From Ascidiella aspersa (Eukaryota), in NCBI GenBank assembly GCA_963924565.1, contig OZ004608.1, forward strand, positions 10,106,001-10,170,000: a DNA stretch of 64,000 bases, given 5' to 3'. Shown here piece after piece: positions 6,801 through 25,812 of the stretch. Position 1 is the first letter of the stretch. Each line of letters begins with the position of its first letter. The notes under the pieces were generated by a model that saw only the letters and a program-made list of their open reading frames with translations, made no database searches and was not told where the DNA came from. A program made the position numbers and the translations under genes.

Positions 6801-8321
6801 TACACCTTTAAAAAATAACATTTAAAACTTTATGAATTGCAATTAATAAACAGCAAAAAAAAATTTAATCAACAGCAAAATACAAAATTTAATCAACAGC
6901 AATTGCTTTGAAACTCACTTCTAATCTTATGTTGAAGCATAGCACAAAGAAGGCTGACAAAAGAACACAAGTTTGCATAAAGGAAGGGAGTACTGGTGAA
7001 CACAAAATTGACAAAACACAACCAGTAAATGCAGCCACTAACATTGAGTACCTAAAAATAAAAAAAACGGACTTGTTCCTAATAATAAAATAACTAAAAG
7101 TTAGCATAACAACTAACAACTATCTAAATAAAGGTAAAGATAGTATAATTACTTATTTATCTTGTGGTTTTTAAAAGACTGTAAAAAAGGTAAACTTTGT
7201 ATTTATTTGTTTATATTATTCATTACCAAAAGTTACCTGGCTGAATTCACTGTGTCAGCAACTTTGTGTTTGATTGAATTGTTTTGAAAGGCATTTAAAA
7301 ACTGCTGTGGTGTTTCTACACACAAATAGTCAAGATCCTCTTCCAGTATAACAACACTCTCCAGTATTTCTTTGCCATATTCAGTGTAATAGTTTTTACT
7401 CTAGCACCATAAAAATAATAAAAAATGGGTAAATGATGATTGAAGACAACCGTGGAACATATATGCTAGAGAATACCAAGCACAACAAGTGTGATGTTAA
7501 CGAGTACCATAGTAAGTGAGATGTAGTTTTACTAAACATATATTTTGCAAAAATAAACTAAAAAAATTGCCAAACCCAACTTTAAAACAAAAATCGTTCA
7601 GACACTCAAATCAAAGCGAGACAAATATTTTGACTTGTCCTATTTTGTTTCATATAGAGTATGTAACATTTTTTAAATCTCACCAATTGAATTAAAATAT
7701 CTTGTGAAATTGGAAAGAAGGATGAAAGCCTGCTTCGCAAATCATTCCATTTTGCACAAATATAACCCTGAAAAACAATATTGTATTGGTAACAGTATGC
7801 ACCAATAACCTGTGTTTCTATACATCTAGAATGTAAAATAAACACCCTAAAGTTATTATCCTTCATTACAATCAAAACTGCTATTTAAACCCTCACCTTT
7901 AGCGTTATGCCATAGAAGAAATTCTTTTCACAGTTTTCAAGTTTTTTATTTGGTTCTCCAATTTTATCATCAACATATAATAGTTCAGTGTTACTCAACT
8001 CACCAAGATACTCATGGAGTGGTGTTCCCTAAAAATTGGAATGAAACAAAGTTGTGTCATTAAATAGTTTAGTAATGATGTAAATTTAAATAAACATTTT
8101 TATTTTAACCTGATTTAAGAAAACAAGATTTTGAGGTGTTTAATAGAAATCTTTAATTGCTTCTTTTTAACAAGCAAATTATATAAAATTTTAAGTACAG
8201 GTAATGCGGAAACCCCATATTAACATTTACAGGTAAATATTGCGTTTCAAATCAATTCACACGGAACCTCCGCTACCTCTAGCGTCACTTCTTCATCCAG
8301 GTCCGTAGCTGTATCATACAT
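680..8321 (-). CDS. VEZT: Vezatin (adherens junction/dynein-related transmembrane protein); spliced gene, 12 coding exons in window (531 codons), 3' end beyond window start
   Basis: Manual splicing gives a continuous frame with GT-AG junctions. Motifs match vertebrate vezatin: DEEVTLE|GTPLHEYL (FDEEVVFENSPLYQYL), ILEEDL, two TM segments, IRLIQEIEVVSRGYKL (LRLIQETEVISRGFTL), PLGELGL, TDGYSLASLK (TDGFSLPALK), HSLQVYLRA (RSLQLHLKA). Confidence 0.93.
1515..1564 (-). CDS. VEZT: VEZT exon (VMRLENDVAQHKKIPP)
   Basis: gccag|G, G|gtaaga; resembles EVIILEDEL. Confidence 0.8.
1810..1885 (-). CDS. VEZT: VEZT exon (GSGKP...HSLQVYLRAAMH)
   Basis: gttcag|GC, GA|gtaagt; SLQxxL motif. Confidence 0.87.
3047..3569. 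mobile_element. hAT-type MITE in a VEZT intron
   Basis: Termini CAGTATTG...CAACACTG, 8-bp TSD GCTATTAA/TCTATTAA (7/8), many internal GACTTG subrepeats; related remnant near 62540-62630. Confidence 0.75.
3587..3727 (-). CDS. VEZT: VEZT exon (FLCNLPG...LRCSFEMHKYF...PSK)
   Basis: tcacag|GC, G|gtatat; resembles LKRSYEFYRYF. Confidence 0.82.
4506..4665 (-). CDS. VEZT: VEZT exon (NLDSS...TDGYSLASLK...FTEK)
   Basis: cacgcag|AAC, G|gtatga; conserved TDGxSL motif. Confidence 0.92.
5337..5580 (-). CDS. VEZT: VEZT exon (LNGRTPIDRL...PLGELGLAFLE)
   Basis: 244 nt open, phases fit neighbouring exons. Confidence 0.88.
6329..6477 (-). CDS. VEZT: VEZT exon (IVFEMWK...RLIQEIEVVSRGYK)
   Basis: Hallmark vezatin motif; tttcag| and |gtaagc. 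Confidence 0.93.
6919..7051 (-). CDS. VEZT: VEZT exon encoding two hydrophobic TM segments
   Basis: ttttag|G, GAA|gtgagt; YSMLVAAFTGCVLSILC...VLLSAFFVLCF. Confidence 0.87.
7237..7400 (-). CDS. VEZT: VEZT exon (SKNYY...ILEEDLDYL...NSA)
   Basis: Open frame, AG|gtaact donor, conserved ILEED. Confidence 0.85.
7684..7767 (-). CDS. VEZT: VEZT exon (GYICAKWNDL...ILIQL)
   Basis: tttcag|GGT, TTG|gtgaga, 84 nt, phase 0-0. Confidence 0.75.
7897..8028 (-). CDS. VEZT: VEZT exon (GTPLHEYLGEL...GITLK)
   Basis: ttttag|GGA, AAG|gtgagg, 132 nt open. Confidence 0.88.
8277..8321 (-). CDS. VEZT: VEZT coding exon 1 (MYDTATDLDEEVTLE)
   Basis: ATG at 8321, donor GTAGCG, phase 0; DEEV motif. Confidence 0.85.
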
Positions 8322-8975
8322 GTTACAATTCACAGGTCAAAACAAACTACAGTACACACTATTCTACCGTCGTCCGATTCTTTTCGTACTCTGTTAATGA
8401 AGTGAAAAACTCTCACGGTGGATTCCCACAACTGTAACTGTACCATTGTCAACAAATAGTATTGAAAGTTTGAACGTCATGTTGTATCGGATTAGAACAG
8501 CAGTTTTACCTTGAAAACTTGTTTTAAAGTTAAATTTTTTTACCGTTAAACGTTACACAAAATGCATAAGGTTTACAAAACATTTTTTTTCTTTAAACAT
8601 TTGCGGTTTTGGTGCCTCTTTGGACGTCTTTCCTATTATATTAATAGAACCACTGTTTTGTAGCCTTTCGTTTTTACAGAAATAAGTAACTAAATTAAAT
8701 TTAAATCAAATGAAATTTATAAAAAACAACAATAATCAGAGTTGAGAACTTTATCGAATAATAAAAACTAAACATTTTCAGAATTTTAACAGTCGTTAAT
8801 ATGTGATTAATCTGGTTTCTAGGTGGCGCTACGGAGCGTGATTTGGAGGTTGATTGTTCCTCAGCAAAAAGTTATAAGGTGACTGGCTGACTGTGCAATT
8901 TCCGACCAAACCCGAACGGGCAAGAAAAACTGCTGCGCCCACGGCTATTTAATGAGAGCAAATAACACGGAAAGA
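8322..8975. promoter_or_regulatory. Divergent (head-to-head) promoter region of VEZT and ALAS
   Basis: VEZT ATG at 8321 (-); TATTTAA at 8946-8952 about 25-30 nt upstream of the ALAS IRE exon; CTCF-like AGGTGGCGCTA 8821-8831; ARE-like TGACTGTGCA 8888-8897. Confidence 0.7.
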
Positions 8976-9057
8976 CTTATTTTGTTCGTTCTCAGTGAAG
9001 AGCAACAGAATAACGTCCGAAGCTAATCAAAACTACAATTACCGTTTGATTTTCAAG
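8975..9057 (+). other. ALAS: ALAS non-coding exon 1 (start approximate), spliced to exon 2 acceptor at 10444
   Basis: Strong donor CAAG|GTGAGT at 9057/9058; acceptor ttttcag|A at 10443/10444; no upstream ATG in the joined UTR. Confidence 0.8.
8977..9013 (+). promoter_or_regulatory. Iron-responsive element (IRE) in ALAS 5' UTR
   Basis: TTATTTTGTT-C-GTTCT-CAGTGA-AGAGC-AACAGAATAA: CAGUGN loop, 5-bp upper stem, unpaired C, 10-bp lower stem; nearly identical to the vertebrate ALAS2 IRE core (GUUCGUCCUCAGUGCAGGGCAAC). Confidence 0.95.
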
Positions 9058-9331
9058 GTGAGTTTTGGGTTAAATTAAAATTGTGCTAAATAACTTTCTG
9101 TGTATAGCTAAAAACGCCTAAATTATTCTGTTTATATAACGTTAGATAGTTTTCATTAGTCCGTATTGGATTTCATTGTATTTTTTTTTCATTTTGAATG
9201 AAAACAGTTCACAATAATAAATAAAGCATCTGTTTCCTGTCTTATTCTTATATATAGTTTTGTTTTTCAGAAAATTTAATAGTTTTGTAGAATCCTTTAC
9301 CAGTTGTTTATGTTTTTTTAGCAAAAATATG

Positions 9332-9533
9332 GGTGCTGCTCTAGAATCCTACCACAATGCACATTATTTGGGTAAGGATGCGGTTAGCGTTTTGGGTTAG
9401 GGTGGGTCAAGTATTATTTAAAAATAATAAATATAATAATACTTGACCCACCCACACCCAAACACTAACTCGCACCCTAACCCAAATATTGTGCGTTGAT
9501 TTAATAATTATGGTATGATTCTAGACCAGCGCC
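9332..9533. mobile_element. Foldback MITE (Merlin-like) in ALAS intron 1
   Basis: Near whole-length inverted repeat (GGTGCTGCTCTAGAATCCTACCA...TGGTATGATTCTAGACCAGCGCC), perfect 8-bp TSD AAAATATG (9324-9331, 9534-9541), GGGTTAGGG-like internal motifs. Confidence 0.85.
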
Positions 9534-10537
9534 AAAATATGTTAAAATATGATTATAATGTGAAGACCACTATGTCAGTTGTTTGTTTTACAAATTATAT
9601 TTAAACTATTTTAGCCTGAAAACCTAGGTTTGATAAGTTCATAACTACCAAATAGCAGTTTCTAGAGAAAAAGAAAACTGCTTCATAGATTTTCTTTCTC
9701 TGTTATGTAATTTCCATTTGTTATTGAAAAATTGCTTTAAATTGGAGCTTGCCTTTTTCAGTCATCACCAACTTTGCAGGCTTAAATAAGCATACATAGT
9801 TCTTAGTAACGCCTCATACTTCCAACCTATTCTGAATATGTCACAGGTTTTATACTAGAGAGCAAAGATTTTGTTCTTGAAACAGACTTTTAGTTTTGTG
9901 TGAATCTGATAATCTTTTATTGATTAAATTAATACTCATATCAAGTCACATTGATTGCAATGACAGCCCTTAAACTACAGTGCCATAAGCAGCTGTTTTT
10001 GTACTATATATATTCCCTTAAAATCACACATGGTTCATACTGAGACAACTCATTAAATTATGTATTCTGTAATGTTCAAGATTATCACTGTTGAATCTTT
10101 AGCGTTTAGTCAGGTTCGAAATGTTGAAAGCTTAGTAAGCAAAGAAACCTATTTGAACATGGTGTTACTGTCCAGTTCTCGCCATTCCTGGAATTTAATG
10201 TTGAACAATGCATGTCAGATTGAAAACAGTTTACAACGGTTAGAATTTATTTTAATTTTTGTTACTATTTTTTTGACAAAATAAGTTGTTTTGGGCTAAT
10301 TTGTTTGTTCTTAAGTAAAGCCAAATTCGACAGTCAGTAAAGATTTTTGTAATATGTATGCTTTGCTTCGGCTTTATGACTTGGAGAATAAAGATTTTAA
10401 AAGTGCCAGTGTCATAATTAGTAGTATTGCCACTTGTTTTCAGACAAAAACTACTCGCCACCTCACGTCTTTGCACAGAAAAGAGCAGCAAGTTTTCACA
10501 GTTCAACAACTTCTCAATTCAAAAGCATCGAACCAGC

Positions 10538-10692
10538 ATGGAATCCATTGTCAGCAAATGTCCGTTTCTGACCAGAGTGCCAAGCCAGTTTCTGCGAAAG
10601 GCCGGCCAGTCGATCATGTCCTATGCCAGCAGATGCCCGATCATGAGCGAATACATGACCAGCTATGCTGCCATGGTTAACCTGCAGACCAG
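10538..10692 (+). CDS. ALAS: ALAS coding exon 1 (presequence, HRM1 KCPFL, HRM2 RCPIM)
   Basis: AGCATGG start context; AG|gtgcga donor, phase 2. Confidence 0.92.
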
Positions 10693-13600
10693 GTGCGATT
10701 CTTTACAATGTTTTGTTATTCTGTTAAAGTACAGGCACTAACACAACAAAAGTTGATAACAAAAATCTTAAAGAGAAACGATTTATTTCTTAGATTCTTG
10801 TTATCTAGAACTTATTAGCAAATAAGGTGCATTTTACAGTCTATTTTTAATGATAATTAAAGTAAATGTTTGAACTGTAATTATTTGATATATGTATTCC
10901 AAACTGCATGGTTTAACACCTGGGTTTAACCAAAACCGAAGGCACTATTATGGACATAAAACTCCTAACTAACTAAATCCCAATTAACATATTTAGTACC
11001 AAGTCAAGATTTCTTCTGCTAGTAAAAGGATGACAAAACAAAACGCTATAATTTTTTAAGCGGCTTAGCGCTATTGTGACAAATTTACAGCCGTTTTTGA
11101 TCGCCTTGTGTAAGGCCGTAGCATCTACGTTTGGCGTGATCGAAACTCTTTATTTCTTCCAGGTCTCATTCCACCTTGGTCAGCGCTGGAACCTGTGAGC
11201 AACTGGCACCGAAGGGAAGCGGTGAGTGTTCCTTGTCGGTTGTGCCGCTCTAACATCGTTAATTACCCAGCTCATGACAGGAAACCTTAGTCGCATTGTG
11301 TTATTGCTCCTCGCAATATCATCCACTATCCAGTCACCGAAACGACGCACCGAGCCGCGAGCGCGATTAGCCCAGCTGTAAACATGGATGTTTCACAATT
11401 AATTTACTCTCATTTATTGAGGGCCTATGTTTCAAATTTGCTGATACCAAAAAAAAAGCATAGCGAATAACCTTCTGAGGAAACTTGTAAAACAGTAAGG
11501 TGTAATAAGTAACGTGTCAAACTTGCGAAACAGTAACGTGTAATGTTTCTTTGTTCAAGAGTTGAACTTCAATCAAAAACGCTTTTTGACCCGATCAAAA
11601 GACAGATTAGTCGAACCCAGGCCACGGCATATTGTCCCCATTCAACAGAACAGTAGCTGCGGAAATGTACGGTTTCTCCGAAAAATGGCAACAAAATCGC
11701 TTTTCATTGTGTCTAAATGCGACTTTCTATAGTGAATAGATAGTGTTCCAAGTTTACCGCGAAGTTGTGTCGTTCGTACCCGATTGAAAGCTGGGCGCGG
11801 AGCAGTTTTGATGTTTAAATATAATTCGAGCAACTGTCATTATATAACGCTGAAAATTAACTCGCGTTTTGAACCGAGATCGGGTATATTTGTATAATTG
11901 TGGCAGTTGCAGCTTTCACGATTTAGTCTCGGCATTCTTACTCTTATTTGACGCAAATTGTCTACATTAGGACTAGCTATATATTTCGCGTTTACGCGTT
12001 TAATCTCTTCCCCTCATAACGTTTTATTTCACCGACAAAAATATATATGCAATATCAATTGTTATTGATTTAGCTCTGCCGCCTTAAGCGTTTGAAAAAT
12101 GAGGCCTTCACCAGTGTTATTGACCGTTTTTGGTAAACCAGCCACTTGGTTTCAGCCATTAAGTCGTTTCTAAACCCTCTCTGTTTTCCACTTTAATGCT
12201 AGCTTTATGGTGTGCTGTGTTCTCCGTCTTAGTCGAAAGGCAGTTATGGAAACTCCCGAGTGCTACCATGACAAGCAAAAATCATAGCAAGAAAGTTAAC
12301 AATTTATTCACGCCATAAAAAGGTTGACCACCCGAGCTATTTCGCCGTATGCCTCACGATTTCCTCGAACCAAATTTCACCACCTAACCGCTGAAAAAAG
12401 TTTTCTAAACATTGATTCTTGCTTTACTTCACTTTGAATTGAAGTTCATACCTTTTGTCAGTGTGTTTTTATTTGGGTCTTAAAGTGTGTTTTTACCCCA
12501 ATCCGCAATTGACACGCCATTAGCATATTAGCGTACAGCTTTATTCTTATGGCTTTATTTAAAAAACCTGAACGCTCGATAAAAATGTGCTTTATGCATG
12601 GAACGAAAACTGGCGGGTGCTGCCATTCCCAGTTGTACCCTTGCCTCCTATTCCAATAAAAAGCGACTTATCGATTTGCGAAAGTCGCGCACAGCGCTGT
12701 AATATTCGACGCCTCTGGTCGGTTACATAACAGTCACTGACAGGCCGGGTCATCTGTCAGCAACAAATGCCGTCGGTCGACATTGCGGATTCGCCGCGTC
12801 GATTATAAGGATTTAACACCGAGATTTCGGAATTTCCGTGGCCAATCTGCAAAGTTTAGCGCCCGAAGGCGCTTTGCGAAGTCAAACTATACAGAATCAA
12901 AGATCGCTAATGAGATGCAGTCTCTAGCTCGCACAACCGCGCAATTAATCAGCGGGCTTATCTTTATACACTACTGACGTGTATTTTTTGGCACGAAAAT
13001 AGTGTGGAAAAAGACGCTAGAAAATGAGTAAGTAGCACTGAAACACTGTAAATCTAGAAAATCATGCTTTTTAAGCTTCCACGATCAATGTTGTCGGGAA
13101 GTAAGATCGTAAAATACTTTGTAAATGAATGCTTGAAGATGCGATGCATAGCTGTAACTGTACCATTGAAACACAGGGTTGTTAAGACACTCTAATAGTG
13201 CGCAGCTCTCTCATAAAGTATATTAGAAAAATACCCGTGCTATTGTGCACACAACGTTATCAATGTTTGTCGATCAACCTTGTTGACAAAAGGAAAGCGG
13301 TTCCAGGCATAAAGCAGTCAATATCTCCCCGGTCAAACTACAGTAAAAGCTTGTAATTGTGCAAAACTAAATTGGAAAAGTAATCGTGCTATTGTGCGCA
13401 TACTGTCGTTTTAACTCGTATCTCACGACGTTAGCAATGTTCGTCATTCAACCTTGTTGACAAAAGGAAAGCAATTCCAGGAATAAGGCAGTTTAATATC
13501 TCCATTGTCAAACTGCAGTAAAAGTAAATTAACCGGTCTGATCAAACTGGTTATGGCGCCCGATAAAAATATTGCTGGCGTTTCAAACGCTTTTGAGATG

Positions 13601-16600
13601 TTTGCCAAATAAAAAGCAGGAAAGTGCAAAAGCGTTTACTTTGTTTGATTGGCAATGTAGCATCGGTAGGCTTGCCTGTTTTTAAAATTATGAAACTAAG
13701 AAAATCAATAATGCAAAGGAATATTCGTGTTAAGGATTAGCCTAGTTAAAATTTTAGCTCACAATAAACATCAGAATAAAATCATCTGTTGCCACACAAT
13801 TTTTTTCCAAATCAGTTTAAAAATGACATCCTTTTCTTACGTGAATCCTTTGAATGCAAGCGAAAAACTATAATCAGAGTTTTGCCAACTTAACAGTAAA
13901 GTCAGAATTTTCCTTTTTTACCACTTTTTTACCATAAAAAGCAATGTTATTTATCATATTTTTCCGTACGCAATCCATTCCTGGAAATTTTGGGCCTGGA
14001 TGTTACCTACGAAAAAGTATAGAAAAATAATAATTGGCTAGATTTGCAATTCCAGTACATTCCGTTTCCGACCACAAGTTATCAGAGTTTCACCAAAAAA
14101 TATCATATCAGAGTTTCACCAAAAATAAAAAATAAAAATCAACTTCAATCAATGTTTTAAACGTGAAAAAAAATACTTTAACCAGAGTTTCGCCAACTTC
14201 AAAAATAACCAAAGTTCAAATTATTTAACCCCTTTACTGCAGCCGCTTTGGACGTGGCCCGCGTCCACCGCCCCACCCCAGACCACTCTTCCCCCAACTT
14301 CGTGTGCCCCTTTCTTAACTGCTCGGTGGGCAAGAACATGTCGCATGCCGCCAGCCTTGACGTACAAGAGGACGCCTTCGAGGACGCGCTGGAACGTCAG
14401 GACGGCATGGTGGCCGGCGAAGACTTGGATGGGCTGGATGAGACCTTCGTGCAGGCCTCAGAGGGTTAGTCTTAACTTGCTTTTGTGTAAAACATTTTTT
14501 TTGGATTTCTGCATTTCAAAACTTGTCGCCTTTAGTTTTGTTATATATTGTTTTTTACAGTGTTATATGTTTTAAATTTTTGGTTTTCAGATAACTTAAT
14601 GAATTCTCACCTTATCTGCAGTACATCACAATATTTAATTATAAAAATCGAAGTTAATTTAGTGCAAACTATTGTAGTTACTCCGCTTCTTGCTATAACG
14701 CTTTTTATTTGGTTTCCTTAAAAATCTAACTGGCGTTTTTTTTGCATAACAACATATTCTTTGGAGGTAAAATTTCCGATAATTCGCCCTAAGTGCAATA
14801 TTTTTTATTTGTTTATTTCCAGACGCTTTTGACGGCACCAACTTTTCGAACCAGATCATGGATACAATCAAGGAGGGCATTGTGACGTCATCTGGCGAGG
14901 TGGTAACCCACACCGGACTCAACAAGACTCCCCCGGGTGAGTTTAAAATAATAAATCTTTGCTGTTGTCCCTCAGTACAATGGACCTTCTGCAATTTCAA
15001 AAAGTGTTTGCAGTTTGTCTTGGCACAAATCTAAAATCTCAACATTGACCAGTAATTAACATGACAATTTAGGAAAGTTACAGCATCAGAACATTTTGTG
15101 TTGGCCCGCAAGTTTTATACTTGAATTTAAACTCGAAAGGTTCAGTTTTAATTGTAGACTAAAACAGATCTTTGATTTAACAGCAATTGCCGTAAACAGT
15201 TTTACATTATTTACGGCTAAAATATATACATTGATTTTAGAATCGTTCGACTACGACCAGTTTCTTGAGGCCAAGATCTATGAGAAGAAGCAGGATCACA
15301 CTTACCGCGTCTTCAAGAAGGTCAGTTATGAATATTTAAAGCGTAAATAAACGGTCTGTGCGTTAACCATAAACTAGCGACAATAGTTCCCCTGGTTCGT
15401 GTTTCGTTTTTAACACCAAGGTACCTTTTGGAACCCTTCCATTTGTTTGTCGCAGAACATTCGAGAAATAACGTAACATTGCTTATATGCGGTAAACCAA
15501 TAACCCGTATGTCGTTTTGTCGTATTTTTTACCTGAAGAAATTTTAACAGTCAATAAAATAATTTGCAAGCAATCTTATGTTCGTCGTACATTCCTATAA
15601 CATCTTACAAACGTCAAAGGTACCTTTTGGAATACTTCTACCATTTTTTTCTGTCGCAGAACGTTCGAGAAATTACGTAACATTGCTTATAGGCAAAAAG
15701 AAATACGCTTAATGTCGCTTTTTTGTCCTGAGAAATCTTAAGAGTCATTAAAATAATTTACAAGCAACAATCCTATCTTTATCGTATCTACCTATAAACC
15801 CTAACTTCAAATGTACTTTTTGGATTGCTTCTACCATTTTTCCCGTCGCAAAACATTCGAAAGATAACGTTACATTGCTTATAGGCGAAAACAAATCGAT
15901 CAAAATCACATTTTTTAAAGAAAAAAAATTAACGAACAATAAAATATTTTGCAAGCAATTTTATGTTTATCGTATCTACCTAACATCTCGTACACCTCAA
16001 AGTCACCTTTTGGAATACTCTAACCATTTTTTCTATCGCAGAACATTTGAGAAATAACGTTACACTGCTTTTAAAGCCGAAAACAAATACGCCTTTAGAA
16101 ATGTTTAACAGTCGGTAAATTAATTTGCATGCAATCTTGTTTAACGTATCCACTTAACATCTCCCAAACCTTAAACGTTCGAAATACCGGTTTTACCTGT
16201 TTTTCGATTCCCATTATCGCCAAGCGTATTTGACGCGCAAACAAGGCTTTGAAAAAGAAACCATATAACTTAACCCAAACCTGGAAAAACTACGCCCCGC
16301 GGGCGAAAATATAAACTGGCCCGCGGTCTGTTTTTAAAAATGTTTTGAAACCCTTACCAGCTTGTACTCTTACCAGCAACAAGGATATTAGAAGGATATT
16401 TACAGACTCTTTTTTAAAGGAATCACACTTTATATTATGTGTATTTTATGTTCGGTTCCGAGCGGCAAAGACATTTTCTGTGTCGCATGCGACCCGCTTT
16501 TAAACACAATTGTCCACCCCTGGCTTAAACGCACCTCGACTGTTGTCCAGGTGAACCGTCGTGCCGACACCTTCCCGTACGCCGAGGATTACTCGCAAGC

Positions 16601-19600
16601 GAACGGCGACTCGCCCCAAAAAATCTCGGTCTGGTGCAGCAACGACTACCTGGGCATGAGCCGCCACCCCAAGGTGCTCGGCGCGATCAGGTGCGTGGAT
16701 GCGGTTGATTTTATTTTTGGTTGTGTGGTTGAAGCGAGGTGCACTTTTTGTTTAGGAAAGTGGCTTTTTTTCGTTAAACGTTCTATTTTTTGTATGTTTT
16801 GCTAATTTTTTAACCATATTTCAAAACATCTGTTGAAGTTTTAGTTTTTGCTTAAAAATTGAATATTTTGCGTTTTTCATACTAATTTTTTTTTGCAATT
16901 TTACAAACAAAGTATCATTTTAGTACATTTATTCATTTTTTTTAACTGAGTTAAAAGTATTACTATTTTTGCGTCAATTATGTATATTTACTTTTTTTGC
17001 ACCCTTTTTACCAAATTTGTCGCTGTATTTTCAATCCGTAAATCTTAACCTTTGTGACTAACTTATAGTAGCCATTCAATTCCAAAATAAAGTTTGTACG
17101 ATTTATTTCCATTGCGATTTTTCTAACAACCATTTTTTTCAAACAAAATCTAAATATTCGTTTCTCTCCAGGTCGACGATTGAGCGTTACGGCGCCGGAG
17201 CGGGCGGCACCAGGAACATCTCGGGAACCTCTTCCCTCCATGAGCAACTGGAGGCGGAGCTTGCGGACCTCCACCGGAAGCAGGGAGCTCTCCTCTTCTC
17301 ATCTTGCTTCGTAGCCAACGACTCGACGCTCTTCACTCTCGCCAAGATGCTACCAGGTAATTGACAAACTAGTTCGGTAAATTTGGTTTAGCGATTTCCT
17401 TTTGAAAGCTTTTAAAAAAAAACGGTTTCAGCTGTTTTTTTTACGAAAAAAGAAAGGTTTTCTAAGCCTTTATTTTATTTGTGTTTCTAAAAGCTGAAAT
17501 AAAAATTTAAGAGAAGTTGGTTTCGAGTTTAAGCGATTTTCTTTCAACAAAATGTTCCCAGCTGTTTTTGTGCTACAAAAGTACTTGTTTTTTGTTTTGG
17601 TCTCTACCAGTTGAAATAAAAATCGAATATAATGTAAATTGGATTGTAGAAAAAAGTCGTGATTTTGTCTTATTATTTTCTTTTCTCTGTCCAAAAGTCG
17701 AAAGCCAGATTTTACACCCGATTAACCTGACCAAAAATAATACAAGAGACACATCGACCTATACCTTAATATATACGCAACATTTACCAAGGGTGTTGGA
17801 CTCGACAAGCAATTACGCTACAACCCTGCATACTTTGCAAACGAGATCTGATAGGCCTGCCGAAAAATGAGTCATTTTCGTGTTATCTGCCCAGGGGCCG
17901 GCTTTACCATGGTAATCGGTGCAGCCTTACAGCAAACCACCAGCAAACGTGCGTGACGTTTGAACGATGACGCGTCCCGCTTCCGTTTAGCTTCTGCACG
18001 GCGGAATCGTCGTTTTAGTACTGTTTGTTTAGAAATAGACAAAATCATTACTTTTCGTGAATATCGTTGGTAGTTACCATCCCCTTGAAGGAATGGGGAT
18101 TTACACTTATAAATGGATGTAAATAAACCAATGTTGGAAAGGTTACCGCTATTATGGACCAATTTAACATGACTGCCTCTAGGTGCTATCTGTTTTTATA
18201 ATGCTTTTGCTTTTTTTACCCGCCATTTGGTACGAGTTTCCCCGAAAAAACTCGTTTGGATTTACAGACGTTCCACATTCATGCCTAACATTTGTGTGGC
18301 CGTACTCGCCTAATCTCTGGTTGCATAACACACCACTAAGGCTCCAGATTTTTTAAAGGCCAAATTTTAGCGTGCCTGTCAATCAGGCTAAGAATAATGC
18401 GTCGTCCGCTTGAAATATTCTCGTAGTTTTGGCCTCAGGGCGAGTCAGTTTGTTGTCAAACTGGCGCTGGATATTTTGAAAAATCTACGCTAATATTTTT
18501 GAAACGGCGATTTAAGAGATTCCCGGTCCTTACCTGGAAAAATTGTTACCAAATTGCTGCAGTAAAATGTTCGCCTGTTTATAGACTTTGACCATGATTG
18601 ACACCTTAATCCTTACCAAAATTGCCTACCGCAAAAAAACGTTCAGGATTGCAGATATTCATCAATTTTGGGTTGATATTCATGGCTGCTATTTTGGTTC
18701 TCCTAACGGCTTCAATATGTTTGCAATTTCACAGTTGAAAAATATTTGTTTAAGCTCTTAATGAAGCGGAACTTTGGTTAAACATTTGCCTTAAGGAAGC
18801 AAAGGAGGCCATTTTTGTCCCAAATTCCTTTTGTGCATAAAATGAAAATCTGTGCACAAAGCTTACATTGGATTTGTTACAACTTTTGAAATTAGAATCT
18901 TTTTAACTGAGTCTAGCTTGGTGACTAGTTTCAGCATCCACACTATATAGTTTATCATTTGTTAGTTCAATCTCAAATTTCGCCCTTCGAGAAACCCGAT
19001 TTCACTCGCGACTTTTAGTGTTGTCATTTATTTCCGACCCCAGCATAACTTCTCTCCAAATGCCCGTGAAATAGAGCGGAAGTGACCAAGCACTTCGAGC
19101 AAAAAACGCCACTAATACGAGAATAGGAAGCAAACTAATGCCCTCAAGTCGTGTTCTGCCATTCGTCTGCTGGTCATTTTCCAGCGATCGGCGTTCGTGC
19201 TAGCAGCTAGCAGCCAGCGCCCACGGCATTACTACCTCCCTAGAGTGACTTGGCGAAAAAAATCGCGAACGCTTGGGCTCACCGCAGCCGTTTCAACAAC
19301 TGAAATGCGCCGTTGCGTTGCATTTTTAATGCTCGGTCGACCGCGCGCTGCGCTAATTATGTTGCGAGTCATTTAAACGGGTTTACGTTATTGTGGCTGT
19401 TTGAAACAGCTTGACAAACGAGCGACTACGCTGTTTTGTAGATTAAGTTCCCCTTACTGGCGACACCGGTAGATGAAATACGTTGTAGGAATATGGAGTA
19501 TTGATTTGTTCTAGGTAATTGGTAATCTGACACGTAATCCTTGACGGGTAATGTTAATAAACCTCTGTTAATTGTCTGTTTCTGTTGTTTGAAAAAACAC

Positions 19601-22600
19601 TTTTGATCAGACGCAAATTGTAAATTGGTCAAAGCTTTTCATAACAGCTTTACACCAGTATTCGAACTACGTTATAAAAATTTGGAATCTTGCTTTGTTC
19701 TGGGTAACTGTTAATCTGACACTTTAGCGTTGACGGGTAATGTTAACAAACCGCTGTGAATCGACTGTTTCTGTTGTTCAAAAAAATCACTTTTAGTCAG
19801 ACGTAAAATTGGAATGTGTTCTTAAGCTGTCGATAGAAATTTGAACTCAGCACTTGGCGTGCCCTAAAACAATTTTCTCGACTATCAGTTGAAAATGACG
19901 TTTTTTTACGCTTGGCCGGTCGTCTTTAAACCGCTGCTTTTGTTCGTGTTCTTTTGACGCAAGTTTTTCACGCGAAAATTGCTCCTGGCTTCTTCGCAGG
20001 AAATCTGTACACCGCCGTTAAACCATGATTTAAAGAAAATGAATTCGAAAATTACGTTCGCCTTTGTCTGTTTTATAAGCGAAGCGCGGAAAAATGATAT
20101 TCTATCTGCACAAATTTTAGAAGTTTATAGAAATTCCCGCCCGCAGTCGCTTCATTTGCATACAGCCGTCGAATTTGTGTAAATTTATTTTTGTTTCCCA
20201 TGGCCGATTCACGCACTTATAAGTCTAATTTCGCCAAACTTCAAACCCAAATTGGGCCAAAATTTGACGCGGTAGTTTCACCCTTGACACGCAACACTGG
20301 TAACAAGCGTGTTACCACGACGGTAAACTTAAACTGCGCCTAGAAGTACAAGTCCGCACTTACTAGTTCAGTCACCTCAAACTGGTTAACGCCGATCTTG
20401 TGTTTGCCCAAACGTCACCGATTGGTTTTTGTGTACTTCGGTCATGTTAAATCATGCACACGTGTCGCGAATTGCATCATACCACCCAATAATCCCGATG
20501 TGTATTTTACTACGCAACAAAGTCGTCCATTCATTTCTGTTTGGTCGTTAGTTGTATTGCGTATATTGCGCGTGATGAGCGTCGGTTAGAAGACGATGCT
20601 GTCCTAACACTTAGGTACATTTTGTTTTGTTGTGTATTGATTTGTCAGCGTTTTTTTCGAAATTCTACGTAACATGCGTAAAATGTCGGTTTGTGAGGGT
20701 TCTTAAATCCGTATTTTCCTTCGTATTTTTAATCACCAAGGACTGCGAAACAACTAAAACCAATGGTTCGTGTTGCGAGGAACTTAAACACGTCACGTAT
20801 TTTACAATGCAAACATCATTTCTCAGGGTTTTTCCGATGTTTAAACAAGAGGATGTTGTAGGGAATTTCATATTTCCATAATAAAGATTACCCATCGGTA
20901 TCACAATATTCAAATGTTTTACACACAGGCACACAAAACAAAACATATTCACATCGCATACCAACCAGTTTTATGTGAAACATCGATTTATTTTCCAATG
21001 AAAAAATTTATGCGGAACAACTACGAATGCGATTTATATTAAACTGCTTTGATAATTAGAAGCCCTTTGTCAGCTGTGAAATTTTTGCCATTACACGTTT
21101 TCAAATATCTTGAACGTTACTTAAGCGTGAAACAACAGATTACAGTTTTGTAAAACTGCAGATAAAATGATTTAGATACAAAAGCTCAGGGTAAAAAAAT
21201 ATTGTAGTTTTAAAACATTAACAAAATAAAAACAAAGCTTTAGGCAATAAGAAATTATGTTAACAAAAAAAAATGTTTTCTAGGTTGCGAGATCTACTCA
21301 GACGCGGGCAACCACGCTTCGATGATCCAGGGCATCCGGAACAGCAGCGTTCCCAAGTTTGTCTTCCGCCACAACGATCCTGAACATCTGGAGGAGCTTC
21401 TCGCCAAGTCCGACCCTTCCAAGCCAAAGATCGTGGCTTTCGAGACTGTTCACTCCATGGACGGTGAGTTGTGCTGACATTACTGTTTTGTAAACTTCGG
21501 ACGCATTTTTTGCATTTTAACAATGCTCTGCCAAATTGGAATCTCAGGCCGATATTCTGCTTGTCAGGCTTCCATTGTCTTCCTGTTATATTTCTGGTGT
21601 GAACTGATAAATTGATTTTTCCACTCGTGTTTAGAACACTCTTGAAACAGTTATCTGTTCGTTTTTTTATAGATAACTTTACATTTTTGCTCCAATAAGC
21701 CTCTTTTTGTTTTTAACCTGTTTTTGTGCTATTTTTACACAACTAAAAAATTAGCCTGGCTGAATTAAAAGTCGTCACGTATTTTTTTTTTAATTTTAGA
21801 AAATAAATAAAGCATTGATCTGACGACACTGAACTAAATTAGATCCGTTTTTTTGTCGTCGGTGTAAAATGTTCTAACCACATTGTGAAAAAAAAATCTA
21901 CGAGCACCCTGGCCAATAGGTGTGCCACAAACCCACTGGCAAAGGTTGCCGAAAAAACAAAAATTGACCAAAAATAAACTTGTTCTTGTCGACAGGCGCG
22001 GTTTGCCCTCTGAAGGAGCTGTGTGACGTTTCGCACAAGTACGGAGCCATTACTTTCGTGGACGAGGTTCACGCGGTTGGACTTTACGGCGAGCGAGGTG
22101 CCGGCATCGGTGAGAGGGACGGACTGCTGGATGACATCGACATCGTCTCTGGCACTTTGGGTAAGCTAAATGTCTGGACGTGATTTTTAAAGTGTAACCG
22201 CACGTTTCGCAGGATTTTAAAAGCGTCGATTCGCTAGGTTTTTATTGTATGCCATTAGTTGCTGCTAGTAACGCACCAGGTCAAATTGTGGCGTCGGTAA
22301 AGTTGTCACATTTTTTTTGCAATATATTGACTGCAGTGCATGTGCTGCATGTTGAAAAAAAGTGTTGAATGGTTGTTTAAGTAGCACTTACGGGCCCGTT
22401 CTGTTCTCAAAGGTTCATCCAGTTTACACAAGATTCATATTCCAGGTTTCCAGGTGAGATGCGCTGCGAAGTGCTTATTGTGCCATGAGTATATAGATAT
22501 AAGTCGAGGAATGGGTCTGGTTAAAGTTTAACTCTAACACAGTTCGAAGAAATTACGCTTTACGACCTTATGCTGTATGATAAGCGGAAATGGTAAAGCT

Positions 22601-25600
22601 GAAAAGTTTTCCCGATGTCGAATTCTTTATAAACGAAATTTAAAAATGATCACGAGACCCCGCAAACGCCATATGTAAATAATTGTAAACAAACCAAGGG
22701 TAAAAATTAAAACAAGTTTTGCGTATATATCAAACGATCAACAGACTATTTTATATCTGTTTTTTTTATAAACAGTCTCAGGATCTGATACGAAAGAAAG
22801 AATCGTTCTTTTAAATTTTATTGTCTGCGGGAGAGTCCTTACTTCCTGGAGTGTTTCAGCTTATATCAAACTATGTTTAATTTGTAACCAAAAAAATTTT
22901 CACGTTGGTACACACATACTTTGCTACGATTTCTGTTGTTGCACTTGTGCCCACAGTATATCCCAATATAGTTCAAATTCCACTGCTATTTCCTATTTTG
23001 AATTCTAGTTCCACAAACCTAACACCGCATCTCGTGATTTTGTCCTTCCTGTGCACATTTAAAGCAAAGTCACTTGAAATCACAAAGAGCCCGAGCCCTG
23101 GACAAACAGTTGTCTCGCGCTGTCACGAGTTAAGAAAGAAGCCTTTGTCCCCGTGACGCGTTTGCGTGATCAAGCACGACCCTAAATTGGGGCACGGACT
23201 ATCTGTCGTTATGCTGGTTCGTGCTCCTACGATAAAATAGCCTTTTTCGTGCCGGACAAGAATTTTCTAGAAATTTGCTCAATTCCGCCTCTTGTGTTCC
23301 AATTTTTTTGGGGCGTTGGCCAATAAAACGCTTTGTATTTACTATACTTCGAATTTAGGAAGTCCATAACTTAACCAACGGTTAATATATCCGATAGAGT
23401 TTTCGAAAATTTGTACAAGTGTACGAAATATTTCAAATAAATTGATACGAAAATAAATGCAAGCAGAATTTACCATTCCGTGTAAATGCTTTACGTTTCT
23501 ATGTTGGAACATTGGCTAAATGACACTGACCCACGATGAACTGTCGCCACGTCATACTCACCAGCGAAGCAATGGAAAGGCTATCAGCCGTGACTTAACA
23601 TATCACAACTTATATCAATACGAGTGTACGACTTACGTAATGCGTGTAGCTCTACCTAAAGGGCGATAACCCCGACATGACTCATCAAATGTGTTATAAA
23701 GTTCATTTAGAATGTTTACACACTGCTTGCTTGCTTACTTATGCTTGGACTTAAAACTGCAACTTTAAACCATGGTATCCGAATGGAGTTGCTCGTTGAA
23801 AGAAGTATTTTCGTGCATTTTTCCTGAGTGGACCTCCTTAACCTAAATTTTCCCGTTTTCACGCCACCCTGTGCTGTGAAAGCAAAATATTAGAGATAGA
23901 CCGATATGTCGGTTTACCGATAATATCGTCCGATATTTAGCTTTTACTGATATATTACGATCGCTAAATATCGGCCGAAATTTAACTACGAAAATATGAC
24001 ATGGTTGTACTTAAAAGTCAAACAAAATTTCTTTATTTTGGCAAGCATTGTTTACTTTAACATCATGCAAAGTTCATGTGCAAAATAAGAGATCAATAAA
24101 CATAGGCAGATTAACAGAAATGTTATTTGGATTTAATTCAAATTTATGAAATTTTACCACATTTCAGGTATAGAAAAAAAATCGTTATCGGTTGGCAATA
24201 CGTAAAAAGATATCGGTATCAATAAAAAAAAAGTGAAATCGGTCGATCTCTAAACAGTATATTCACCTATTATTCACACATGTAAGCTTGCAACACCTTT
24301 TTATCAAATCGCATAATCACTTTTCCAGGCAAGGCCTTCGGTAACGTGGGCGGTTACATCGCCAGCTCGGCTGCGTTGATCGACACGGTTCGGAGTTACG
24401 CTGCTGGCTTCATCTTTACCACTGCTCTGCCCCCAATGAACCTGGCTGGTGCCTTGGCCGCTGTGTGCGTGCTCAAGTCGAACGAGGGTCGGGCCCTTCG
24501 CGCTCGTCACCAACGCATGGTGTCCGCTATGCGCAAGATGCTGATGGCCGCCAATCTTCCCGTGGTACACTGCCCCAGTCACATCATTCCAATTAAGGTA
24601 AGGTGGCCGTTTTAAGTTGGCTGTTTTTGTGTGTTTGTCGATGGACGGCTATTTTTTTAAGGCGTTTTTTAATAGACAAGACAAATCAAAACGCCCAAGT
24701 CATCATTCCTATTAACGTACGGTCGGTGAAAGCTGGTTGTTTTTTGTGTGACTTTTTGACCGACAGTTAATTGTCTTTTTGTAAGGCGGTTCTAAATAGC
24801 CCACACGTATTAAATTATTTTTCGGGTTATTTTTTAAAGTTGTTTTTCGCTTTGAAGAATTTAGCGCAATTCAGCTGAACTTTAACAATAAAAACGTATT
24901 TTTTTTGTTGGTGTTTTTTTATCCTAAATTTAGTTTACGCCGAAGTACACCGCTTTTATGTTTGTACGAATCCCTTATATTATACCTTTGAGAAAAGACA
25001 TGTTTCGTTATTTTAGTATTGACAACGAAACACGCCAAAATATGTTGACATGCCAATTAACCACGACTCTCCAGCTAATTATATACTAATTAGTCGTCAG
25101 TTTGTCCAGCCGACGCAATTTTTCCATCGCTATAGCAGTAATTACTGTCATTTCGATCAGCCCCGCATTTAGGCTCGCAATTCGAACCAAAACAGAACGT
25201 AACGCCCCTTGTCCACGTCATAATCACCGCATTGTGACGTCACGCAGGTCGGCGACCCGGAGAAGTGCACGGCGCTGAGCGACCTGCTTATGAACAAGTA
25301 CGGCATCTACGTGCAGGCGATCAACTACCCGACGGTGCCGCGCGGCGAAGAGATGCTCAGGGTGGCGGCAACACCTGGTCACACACTGCCGCTTATGAGG
25401 TGGGTAGCTGACGTTATACACACGCGTAGGACGGTTTTAGGGTTCGATTTGGCGGCCATTTTGTGTCAACGCTTGGGGTTTTCTTGCCTAACTACTTTTA
25501 GCTTAACGACTAACGTTGTTTTCTGATCTGATCTTTTTAATACAATTAATAATCCCCAAAGAAAAAAATTATAAAATTAAAAAGAAGAATTATACGAAAA

Positions 25601-25812
25601 CCTTCTTACACTATCAATTGTTAACCTCGCTTATTTTATCCTTTCTTTTTTTTTCTTTCAGGCACTTTGTGAACAGTGTGCGTCAGGCCTGGAGCGAGGT
25701 CGGTCTGCCCACCGAGGCCGGCCACAAGATGGAGCAGTGTGAGTTCTGCCGCAAGCCGGTTCAGTTCGAGCTGCTCTCTTCTCGAGTTCGACTCGCGGCT
25801 GCCTCGCAGTGA
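10538..25812 (+). CDS. ALAS: 5-aminolevulinate synthase, mitochondrial (623 aa, 12 coding exons)
   Basis: Spliced frame 1872 nt incl. stop. Motifs: [11 protein letters not shown] presequence, [75 protein letters not shown](PLP)[28 protein letters not shown]. Confidence 0.98.
11163..11221 (+). CDS. ALAS: ALAS small exon ([19 protein letters not shown])
   Basis: ttcttccag| and G|gtgagt; needed to bridge phase 2 to phase 1. Confidence 0.8.
13236..13524. repeat. Two-copy diverged tandem duplication (offset about 150-175 bp)
   Basis: TCAACCTTGTTGACAAAAGGAAAGC at 13274 and 13448; CGTGCTATTGTGC at 13236 and 13385. Confidence 0.85.
14243..14464 (+). CDS. ALAS: ALAS exon with HRM3 (VCPFL) and DVQED
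   Basis: actgcag|CC, G|gttagt, phase 1-1. Confidence 0.9.
14823..14936 (+). CDS. ALAS: ALAS linker exon (114 nt, phase 1-1)
   Basis: atttccag|AC, G|gtgagt; open frame. Confidence 0.85.
15241..15320 (+). CDS. ALAS: ALAS exon (SFDYDQF...DHTYRVFKK)
   Basis: Start of catalytic core; GT-AG. Confidence 0.96.
15418..16175. repeat. About 4-copy tandem repeat, 190-199 bp unit, in an ALAS intron
   Basis: Units start (AAGGTACCTTTTGG-like) at 15418, 15617, 15810, 16000; shared TCGCAGAACATTCGAGAAATAACGT-like and TTGCAAGCAAT-like blocks. Confidence 0.9.
16551..16690 (+). CDS. ALAS: ALAS exon (VNRRA...[14 protein letters not shown])
   Basis: Conserved motif; GT-AG. Confidence 0.96.
17172..17356 (+). CDS. 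ALAS: ALAS exon ([12 protein letters not shown]...LAKMLP)
   Basis: Glycine loop; GT-AG. Confidence 0.97.
19505..19812. repeat. Two-copy tandem duplication, about 189 bp offset
   Basis: TAATCTGACAC...TTGACGGGTAATGTTAA...CTGTTTCTGTTGTT repeated. Confidence 0.85.
21284..21463 (+). CDS. ALAS: ALAS exon ([18 protein letters not shown]...VHSMD)
   Basis: Conserved motifs; GT-AG. Confidence 0.97.
21996..22160 (+). CDS. ALAS: ALAS exon (AVCPL...[12 protein letters not shown]...SGTL)
   Basis: Conserved motifs; GT-AG. Confidence 0.97.
23891..24252. mobile_element. MITE with TAGAGAT...ATCTCTA termini (hAT-like) in an ALAS intron
   Basis: TIR TAGAGATAGACCGAT / ATCGGTCGATCTCTA; internal CCGATA/TATCGG repeats; TSD degenerate. 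Related TAGGGATG-type relics near 46402-46810, 61340-61426 and 33330-33376. Confidence 0.75.
24329..24597 (+). CDS. ALAS: ALAS exon (KAFG PLP lysine...CPSHIIPIK)
   Basis: Conserved motifs; GT-AG. Confidence 0.97.
25248..25399 (+). CDS. ALAS: ALAS exon (VGDP...[14 protein letters not shown])
   Basis: Conserved active-site loop; GT-AG. Confidence 0.96.
25662..25812 (+). CDS. ALAS: ALAS terminal coding exon (HFVNS...[14 protein letters not shown]...SQ*)
   Basis: Long pyrimidine tract acceptor; CXXC; TGA at 25810-25812. Confidence 0.94.

Follow-up and report, generated by a model that had tools for sequence, protein, structure and literature searches.

The IRE of vertebrate ALAS2 represses translation through IRP, and it is carried by a non-coding first exon beside the cap site. 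Closeness to the cap is needed for translational repression by a 5'UTR IRE. A passage of PMC2896125 places ALAS2 among the well-characterised IREs, and a passage of bioRxiv 10.1101/524991 notes the C-bulge of the ALAS2 IRE. The sections of Tzou et al. 2014 (PMC3904948) on which we draw report that tunicate ALAS, sea-urchin ALAS and teleost ALAS1 have IREs of high quality in the 5'UTR, and credit the IRE of Ciona intestinalis ALAS to Piccinelli and Samuelsson 2007. The same sections find HRMs in all three (3/3) non-vertebrate chordate ALAS proteins, place tunicate ALAS outside both ALAS1 and ALAS2, and propose an ancestral ALAS with both an IRE and HRMs. An IRE on tunicate ALAS and the idea of a dual-control ancestor are already in print (2007, 2014; PMC3904948). 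A search of the newer literature for ascidian IRE/IRP experiments returned nothing.

A preliminary description of the locus studied here referred to ALAS IREs in some invertebrate deuterostomes, in agreement with the tunicate and sea-urchin reports in the cited sections of PMC3904948. It also held that the vertebrate paralogs had partitioned the two controls, with the IRE going to ALAS2 and strong haem feedback to ALAS1. So clean a partition is too simple, given that in the same source three of the four teleost ALAS1 5'UTRs have an IRE and four of the five mammalian ALAS2 proteins carry HRMs.

The ALAS gene and its transcript

The window, by which we mean the whole 64-kb stretch of DNA that was analysed, contains a 5-aminolevulinate synthase (ALAS) gene of 13 exons on the + strand. 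The features of the gene and of its 5' end are as follows.

8946-8952, + strand: TATA-like box TATTTAA, from sequence, with a presumed function; the hairpin begins 25 nt downstream
8977-9013, + strand: IRE hairpin of the simple C-bulge type, from sequence, fold and motif rules
8977-9057, + strand: exon 1, non-coding; 3' end fixed at 9057 and followed by a GT donor, probable 5' end placed from the TATA-like box
9058-10443, + strand: intron 1 (GT..AG), from sequence and RNA depth
10444-10692, + strand: exon 2, with 94 nt of 5'UTR, the start codon (10538-10540) and the presequence, from RNA
11163-11221, + strand: exon 3, coding, 59 nt, with an AG acceptor and a GTGAGT donor; RNA depth about 26 beside 11221, where six molecules end
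14243-14464, + strand: exon 4, carrying Cys-Pro motif 3; 16 reads continue past 14464 with the opening letters of exon 5
14823-14936, + strand: exon 5; start from the loose-end letters at 14464, end from a GTGAGT donor and phase
15241-15320, + strand: exon 6, in which the conserved ALAS core begins, from splice sites and phase arithmetic
16551-16690, + strand: exon 7; TIGR01821 match at 16539-16691 (46.9 bits), boundaries by phase
17172-17356, + strand: exon 8; TIGR01821 (90.1 bits), Pfam Aminotran_1_2, phase
21284-21463, + strand: exon 9; TIGR01821 (100.8 bits), phase
21996-22160, + strand: exon 10; TIGR01821 (93.9 bits), phase
24329-24597, + strand: exon 11; TIGR01821 (107.6 bits), PLP-binding lysine codon at 24331-24333
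25248-25399, + strand: exon 12; TIGR01821 (67.8 bits), phase
25662-25809, + strand: exon 13, ending with the stop codon, from phase arithmetic

Phase arithmetic, carried out exon by exon, gives a coding total of 1869 nt, or 622 codons and a stop. Without exon 3, exons 2 and 4 would be out of phase in this model. The six exon matches to TIGR01821 (46.9-107.6 bits) together cover model positions 22-391, and the whole-protein cut-off is inapplicable to such matches taken one exon at a time. The best PDB match of exon 11 is human ALAS2 at 119 bits, and the best non-ALAS relative reaches 33.7 bits. The lysine codon at 24331-24333 aligns with the lysine at chain position 273 of human ALAS2, which we take to be the PLP lysine. 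At the other end of the protein, the exon-2 peptide scores 50 bits with Pfam Preseq_ALAS (PF09029), for which the cut-off is 21. A word search for relatives with the same peptide yielded no candidate. The alignment of the presequence to that of human ALAS1 in the preliminary description is presumably about right.

Two further observations concern this region. Exon 3 was absent from the exon list of the preliminary description, and within intron 1 a palindromic sequence at about 9291-9684 is highly repeated, with contig word depth reaching 237,699 in the repeat bins.

RNA-seq evidence was drawn from 263 reads of one run, of which about 6 in 100 was covered. RNA depth is 33.5 in the bin 8897-9093 and falls to 0 in the next bin, which belongs to intron 1; outside the repeat, the depth of intron 1 is 0. 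Eight reads depart from the genomic sequence at 9057 and continue with the letters of 10444-10459, the first 16 of exon 2, and every exon read is oriented as expected for + strand RNA. The exon 1-exon 2 joint is not among the 15 of 28 joints listed, and the evidence for the splice is that of loose ends and depth. There are 63 reads at 9044 in exon 1 and 34 at 10579 in exon 2, and RNA depth in the exon-2 bin is 48.1. In this one run, exon 1 with its IRE is cis-spliced to the ATG exon, and its depth equals or exceeds that of exon 2. No ATG occurs in exon 1 or in 10444-10537, leaving no upstream ATG before the start codon at 10538. Since the non-coding exon 1 is spliced to the ATG exon, the IRE is present in the mature mRNA; the preliminary description, which depended on this point, is borne out by the expression of exon 1 and its splicing.

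A transcription start at about 8977 fits the TATA-like box 25 nt upstream, with 5 reads covering 8902 and 63 covering 9044. The five reads at 8902 lie upstream of the box, and some transcripts therefore begin farther from the hairpin. The cap-proximal position claimed earlier for the hairpin is supported in part: the placement of the box agrees with it, and the five reads at 8902 do not.

These reads bear on whether the IRE exon is optional. Spliced-leader trans-splicing is common in tunicates, and some ALAS mRNAs might receive a spliced leader at the exon-2 acceptor, or might start upstream or within the intron, with the result that iron control would act on part of the mRNA pool, as a switch between IRE-plus and IRE-minus messages. 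Such an arrangement, which would add to the main explanation developed below, is suggested by the position of the IRE alone on a non-coding exon, by the five reads that start upstream of the TATA-like box, by 2 intron reads at 10226, and by a depth of 9.5 in the bin 10276-10472, slightly above the share that 29 exonic nt would contribute at the depth seen in the exon-2 bin. However, the coverage of exon 1 at least equals that of exon 2, the depth of the intron outside the repeat is 0, and among the loose ends listed (179 more exist) there is none with other letters at 10444. We consider an optional IRE exon unlikely.

Structure and rarity of the hairpin

A canonical IRE was defined by the rules of SIREs motif 1 given in a passage of PMC2896125. 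In that passage the apical loop is a six-base CAGUGH; the upper stem has five pairs with no mismatch or 3' bulge and no more than two wobbles; n7 and n25 are paired, with n25 not G; and the lower stem is additional (PMC2896125). The loop of the ALAS hairpin is CAGTGA (CAGUGA in RNA), six bases at 8993-8998. Five bases 5' of the loop, the C at 8987 is unpaired in both the MFE and the centroid folds. All five pairs of the upper stem (5/5) are present, one of them U.G, and the lower stem consists of 10 contiguous pairs, 8977-8986 with 9004-9013, again with one U.G; the n7-n25 pair is T8986 with A9004. The element at 8977-9013 thus agrees with SIREs motif 1 in its loop, unpaired C, upper stem, lower stem and UTR location. 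The MFE structure is exactly the IRE hairpin, with a z of -2.69 and an energy of -16.7 kcal/mol that two of 200 shuffled sequences also reached. The preliminary description had seen here a textbook IRE about 25 nt after TATTTAA, and both the form of the hairpin and its distance from the box at 8946-8952 are upheld. It had also counted three differences from the core of the human ALAS2 IRE, a figure that is presumably about right.

A rule-based scan of both strands of the 64 kb detected a single canonical IRE, that at 8977-9013, and none was detected in 300 shuffles. When the scan was relaxed to four of five upper pairs, two matches were obtained in the 64 kb, and the n7-n25 pair was found only in 8977-9013. 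Analytically, about 9e-4 canonical IREs are expected by chance in 64 kb, and about 6e-7 in an exon of 81 nt. At the stem length of the ALAS hairpin, the expectation for the whole genome is about 0.03.

Rfam searches detected no IRE family at gathering in the whole 64-kb window, nor at E up to 10 in 8900-9100 (201 bases, with 6 unrelated weak matches) or in 8968-9022 (55 bases, with 1 unrelated match). The gathering score of IRE_I (RF00037) is 34 bits. Because the Rfam IRE models gave no match, the ALAS hairpin was judged by the published motif rules; of the two checks that had been suggested, a scan by Rfam or by SIREs, it is the SIREs rules that identify the element.

The silence of the Rfam IRE families is compatible with a hairpin that is IRE-like without binding IRP in vivo, a stem-loop of the promoter or leader that arose by chance or has some other use. 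The failure to detect a canonical IRE near both ferritin genes (see below) points the same way. Yet every canonical rule holds for this hairpin, with a lower stem of 10 bp in addition; the chance expectations just given are low both for the exon and for the whole genome at that stem length; and ALAS is a gene in which such an element is known. We regard a non-binding hairpin as highly improbable. In form, the hairpin is a genuine IRE, canonical in sequence and structure.

Cys-Pro motifs and ALAS copy number

Three Cys-Pro motifs are encoded by the gene.

10556-10570, + strand: Cys-Pro motif 1, KCPFL, in exon 2 (Cys-Pro codons 10559-10564)
10631-10645, + strand: Cys-Pro motif 2, RCPIM, in exon 2 (Cys-Pro codons 10634-10639)
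14302-14316, + strand: Cys-Pro motif 3, VCPFL, in exon 4 (Cys-Pro codons 14305-14310)

The HRM_t consensus, as stated in the cited portion of PMC3904948, is [N/K/R]-C-P-[K or hydrophobic]-[L/M]. Two of the three motifs (KCPFL and RCPIM) fit this consensus, and VCPFL fails at the first position only. By consensus, KCPFL and RCPIM are putative haem regulatory motifs. A presequence with CP motifs, and a third motif (VCPFL) downstream, had been noted earlier; the Preseq_ALAS match and the Cys-Pro positions at 10559, 10634 and 14305 confirm both.

A search of the 308.6-Mb assembly with Preseq_ALAS gave one match, at 47 bits, which is the ALAS gene described here. Other candidates for a second ALAS were rejected. 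Three intronless TIGR01821 matches appear to be SPTLC2-like (the one of the three that was checked scores 718 bits to human SPTLC2), and a gene at 19.67 Mb of contig C3 is KBL/GCAT-like, scoring 126.7 bits to KBL and 60.9 bits to ALAS2. Three further TIGR01821 matches, at 17.18-17.20 Mb of contig C2, are weak (27-30 bits). Within the 308.6-Mb assembly, no presequence-bearing ALAS other than the gene in the window was found, and the copy number that the preliminary description had asked for is accordingly one by the presequence match, the other TIGR01821 matches that were checked being SPTLC2- or KBL-like.

A GH6 domain match makes the animal look tunicate-like, and so of a lineage outside the vertebrate ALAS1/ALAS2 split. 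The hairpin could be a working IRE that was gained independently in tunicates, and not one that goes back to a common ancestor with vertebrate ALAS2. IREs are short elements that have arisen repeatedly; the cited portions of PMC3904948 invoke convergent gain for other haem-pathway genes and record an IRE in 1 of 2 non-vertebrate chordate ALAS 5'UTRs (Table 4). Against convergence, the element here matches that of vertebrate ALAS2 in its simple C-bulge type, its gene family and its position, and IREs are reported also in sea-urchin ALAS and teleost ALAS1 (PMC3904948, same portions). Independent gain appears quite improbable to us.

IRP1 and the proposed control of ALAS

The genome includes an IRP1-type gene, a multi-exon aconitase_1 gene on contig C3. 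The exon that was tested scores 97.9 bits to human IRP1, compared with 32.7 bits to mitochondrial aconitase.

We think it likely that the 5'UTR IRE on the only ALAS of this animal brings IRP1-mediated iron control and haem feedback together on one gene. Under iron scarcity, the IRP1-type aconitase encoded on C3 would, in its apo form, bind the hairpin near the cap, and the bound protein would block recruitment of the small ribosomal subunit, with less ALAS being made. With enough iron and Fe-S clusters, IRP1 would leave the hairpin and translation would proceed. The Cys-Pro motifs of the presequence may add end-product feedback by haem on import or stability. A single gene would in this way read both iron and haem, as has been proposed already for the gene from which vertebrate ALAS1 and ALAS2 descend. 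The preliminary description had arrived at the same idea of one gene under iron and haem control. Its components are in place, in that the IRE, the Cys-Pro motifs and an IRP1-type gene are all present, but the idea is not a discovery, the proposal being found in the cited portion of PMC3904948.

A genome scan with RF00037, in which 82 of 126,116 candidates were scored, listed one site, a ferritin-type IRE at 3198403-3198430 of contig C9, at 30.5 bits. No ferritin exon was found within about 27 kb downstream of the C9 IRE, the ferroportin genes lie away from it, and two Cys-rich open frames near it gave no Pfam match. In the upstream stretches of the two animal ferritin genes, about 15 kb for one and about 20 kb for the other, no canonical IRE was found. 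A "ferritin" on contig C45 was rejected as an animal ferritin control; the contig is 37 kb long, transposase-like and transporter-like frames adjoin the gene, and it was read by eye as bacterial.

One speculative reading is that the IRP regulon has been rewired, such that ALAS keeps a perfect C-bulge IRE, the ferritins have no canonical IRE in the 15-20 kb or so upstream, and the C9 IRE sits on its own non-coding exon before a gene other than ferritin. We hold this to be rather unlikely. If it were true, translational iron control would have shifted from iron storage to haem synthesis and another target.

Comparison with known IREs

Ferritin-type IREs (IRE_I, RF00037) have in common with the ALAS hairpin their loop, the conserved unpaired C and an expected action in the 5'UTR. 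They have an internal loop around this C, unlike the ALAS hairpin, and IRE_I matches the C9 element but nothing at the ALAS hairpin.

The vertebrate ALAS2 element, likewise of the simple C-bulge type, has a CAGUGN loop and lies at the 5' end of its mRNA. The gene described here differs from ALAS2 in being the only ALAS, and although its Preseq_ALAS match is strong, the solved ALAS2 presequence peptide (1h7d) is matched weakly, at 13.3 bits (E 0.8). Haemoglobin-filled red cells are not known from this animal. Reporters can be electroporated into sea squirts, and the element offers a simple system for the role of an ALAS IRE where red cells make no haemoglobin.

Teleost ALAS1 and sea-urchin ALAS, as described in the cited sections of PMC3904948, resemble this gene in combining an IRE with N-terminal HRMs outside the erythroid paralogue. 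They belong to other lineages and, like the present case, are computational predictions. The ALAS gene of Ciona intestinalis is similar in being from a tunicate, in being a single ALAS and in having a high-quality 5'UTR IRE (PMC3904948, same sections). Compared with the Ciona case, RNA-seq support for the exon 1-exon 2 splice is added here. The ALAS IRE opens no new question; it provides a second, independently read tunicate case, with transcript evidence, for the published proposal that a single ancestral ALAS was under iron and haem control before the vertebrate split into housekeeping and erythroid genes.

Structure of the hairpin in the ALAS leader

The first, non-coding exon (8977-9057, with its 5' end placed from the TATA-like box) of the 5-aminolevulinate synthase (ALAS) gene carries a hairpin that qualifies as a canonical iron-responsive element (IRE). 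Its features are:

8946-8952, + strand: TATTTAA box, 25 nt upstream of the first paired base of the IRE
8977-9013, + strand: IRE hairpin, TTATTTTGTTCGTTCTCAGTGAAGAGCAACAGAATAA, read directly from the sequence
8987, + strand: the single unpaired C
8993-8998, + strand: the six-base loop

Folding of the 66-nt surround gave one hairpin as both MFE and centroid structure (-16.7 kcal/mol, z -2.69), and 2 of 200 shuffles equalled it. Five pairs, including one U.G, form the upper stem, and another 10 contiguous pairs form the lower stem. By the SIREs rules, as quoted from PMC2896125, this is canonical motif 1, with no mismatch or 3' bulge, one wobble pair, n7 and n25 paired, and n25 not G. The preliminary description of a textbook IRE about 25 nt past TATTTAA is thus borne out, the spacing being read directly.

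Both strands of the 64 kb were scanned for C, 5 bases, CAG[T/A]GH and 5 bases, all five upper-stem pairs being required. With at least 5 lower-stem pairs required, one canonical site was found, versus none in 300 shuffles; easing the rule to 4 of 5 upper pairs added one site, at 7376, which lacks the n7-n25 pair. Base composition predicts approximately 9e-4 sites per 64 kb and 6e-7 per 81-nt exon; per genome the expectation is about 4 with a 5-pair lower stem and about 0.03 with 10 pairs. Of the two motif checks proposed earlier, the SIREs rules recovered the element and Rfam did not: no Rfam IRE family matched the ALAS hairpin at gathering in the whole window, or at E up to 10 in 201 or 55 bases. 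The Rfam model IRE_I scores 30.5 bits on a ferritin-type element of contig C9 (gathering score 34), and we infer that its silence on the ALAS hairpin reflects a model tuned to ferritin-like IREs.

Exon 1 in the mature mRNA

RNA evidence came from one run bearing the same species label, of which about 6/100 was sampled, yielding 263 reads on 8700-14600. All exon reads had the first mate on the - strand, the usual orientation for + strand RNA in most stranded libraries. Depth was 33.5 in 8897-9093, 0 in 9094-9290 and 48.1 in 10473-10669. Eight reads leave the genome at 9057 and continue as ACAAAAACTACTCGCC, which is 10444-10459; GTGAGT begins at 9058 and AG immediately precedes 10444. The joints among the 15 listed of 28 all came from DNA contigs within an intronic repeat, so the splice from exon 1 to exon 2 rests on these loose ends and on depth. 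On this evidence the hairpin is carried in the mature mRNA, as the preliminary description supposed. With 63 reads over 9044 and 34 over 10579, transcripts carrying exon 1 are no minor variant in this sample.

No pile-up of RNA starts was called at the 5' end of exon 1, and five reads over 8902, upstream of the TATA-like box, suggest a minor upstream start. The 5'UTR pieces (8977-9057 and 10444-10537) contain no ATG. Among the 40 sequence differences listed of 89, none falls inside 8977-9013; a G>C in the part of exon 1 beyond the hairpin, at 9044, appears in 31 of 63 RNA reads and in the contigs of both DNA runs. Intron 1 also holds a palindromic, MITE-like repeat (9291-9684), with peak contig word depths of 237,699 and 120,910 in the two DNA runs, versus approximately 100 and 60 in the flanks. 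Alternative joints are numerous in this repeat, and its RNA reads come from both strands.

The ALAS gene and its copy number

A six-frame search took in all 75 contigs of the assembly (308.6 Mb), in which the window corresponds to C2:10106001-10170000, and the ALAS gene was searched exon by exon. TIGR01821 matched six exons in the window (model positions 22-391). The sole genome match to Pfam Preseq_ALAS is the exon with ATG 10538, whose peptide scores 50 bits; its resemblance to the solved ALAS2 presequence peptide 1h7d is weak (13.3 bits, E 0.8). For exon 11 the scores are 119 bits against human ALAS2, 78.6 against Rhodobacter ALAS and at most 33.7 against other alpha-oxoamine synthases. Two coding features are:

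11163-11221, + strand: exon 3, 59 nt, coding, found through RNA depth and absent from the preliminary exon list
Exons 2 and 4, + strand: Cys-Pro motifs KCPFL and RCPIM (exon 2) and VCPFL (exon 4), from the sequence

With exon 3, splice sites and reading phases give a model of 13 exons, one non-coding and 12 coding, the phased exons summing to 1869 nt. All three Cys-Pro motifs of the preliminary description are present; two of the three, KCPFL and RCPIM, fit the haem regulatory motif consensus (HRM_t) of PMC3904948, and VCPFL fails at its first position.

Within the sensitivity of the scans, and apart from three weak matches at C2:17.18-17.20 Mb, the assembly holds a single ALAS gene, which addresses the copy-number check proposed earlier. 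Other TIGR01821 matches were rejected as a second ALAS: two on C4 and one on C9 are SPTLC2-like intronless ORFs (718 bits to human SPTLC2 for the one of three checked), and that at C3:19.67 Mb is a KBL/GCAT-like gene. The SPTLC2-like ORFs (514-530 aa, alpha-oxoamine synthase fold) lie at C4:34152890-34154056 (-), C4:34161279-34162442 (-) and C9:10409191-10410297 (-), the C4 pair in tandem 8 kb apart. Their lack of introns suggests retrocopies that stayed open, the parent gene normally being multi-exon.

A candidate IRE-binding partner

C3:38048093-38059930, - strand: multi-exon IRP1/AcnA-type gene, model positions 18-841

One exon of this aconitase-type gene scores 97.9 bits against human IRP1, 79.2 against IRP2 and 32.7 against mitochondrial aconitase. 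As judged from sequence, the leader of the sole ALAS mRNA carries a canonical IRE and a candidate IRP1-type gene is available. By analogy with the vertebrate mechanism, apo-IRP1 would bind the putatively cap-proximal hairpin at low iron and block initiation, and Fe-S cluster assembly would release it. Haem on the Cys-Pro motifs may limit ALAS import or stability; with both controls on one gene, haem synthesis could be matched to iron supply and haem level.

Other iron genes and a tunicate marker

The IRE_I genome scan listed a single site, the ferritin-type IRE at C9:3198403-3198430 (+), TATGCTTCAACAGTGTTTGAACAACTTA. A GT donor lies directly 3' of it, so it seems to stand on a non-coding first exon, as does the ALAS element. 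No ferritin exon was found within approximately 27 kb downstream, neither of two Cys-rich open frames lying some 15 kb downstream matched Pfam, and ferroportin was rejected as host since the ferroportin genes lie elsewhere. Only two animal ferritin loci were found:

C2:8462700-8464450, - strand: animal ferritin locus
C5:6064192-6064347, - strand: animal ferritin locus

No canonical IRE was found upstream of them (about 15.5 kb for C2 and 19.6 kb for C5, both strands, 4 of 5 upper pairs allowed), which does not prove absence because the 5' exons of both loci were not located. The assembly's best "ferritin" match (141.8 bits, intronless) is on C45, a contig of 37,318 bases, adjoining two long open frames that, judged by eye, look like a transposase and a membrane transporter; C45 looks bacterial (contaminant or symbiont) rather than animal. 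Two ferroportin (FPN1) genes, C4:12196933-12198429 (+) and C9:11187230-11188816 (-), each hold the entire Pfam model in one stop-free frame and are therefore apparently intronless.

A GH6 domain match at C5:19613851-19614090 (+), on a 34-Mb contig, scores 28.1 bits (cut-off 27). The match is compatible with tunicate cellulose synthase, the only GH6 known in animals, and gives weak support for a sea squirt.

Comparison with known ALAS genes

The IRE of this tunicate-like animal is real, expressed and canonical, and its host gene is a single-copy ALAS bearing HRMs. Our search of a literature collection found no IRE/IRP experiments in ascidians. Tzou et al. (2014; PMC3904948) applied SIREs across haem-pathway genes and reported high-quality 5'UTR IREs in the ALAS of "one chordate (tunicate)", one of two non-vertebrate chordate UTRs, in purple sea urchin ALAS, and in teleost ALAS1 (3 of 4). 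They credit the Ciona intestinalis ALAS IRE to Piccinelli and Samuelsson (2007), in a sentence that mislabels Ciona as an echinoderm. HRM_t was present in all three non-vertebrate chordate ALAS proteins (PMC3904948). The preliminary description had vertebrate ALAS1 and ALAS2 dividing haem and iron control between them; that division was incomplete, since teleost ALAS1 retains an IRE and HRM_t persists in 4 of 5 mammalian ALAS2 proteins (PMC3904948). Its broader reading, of one gene under iron and haem control that was later partitioned, is reasonable but not new: an ancestral ALAS with both IRE and HRMs had already been proposed in PMC3904948.
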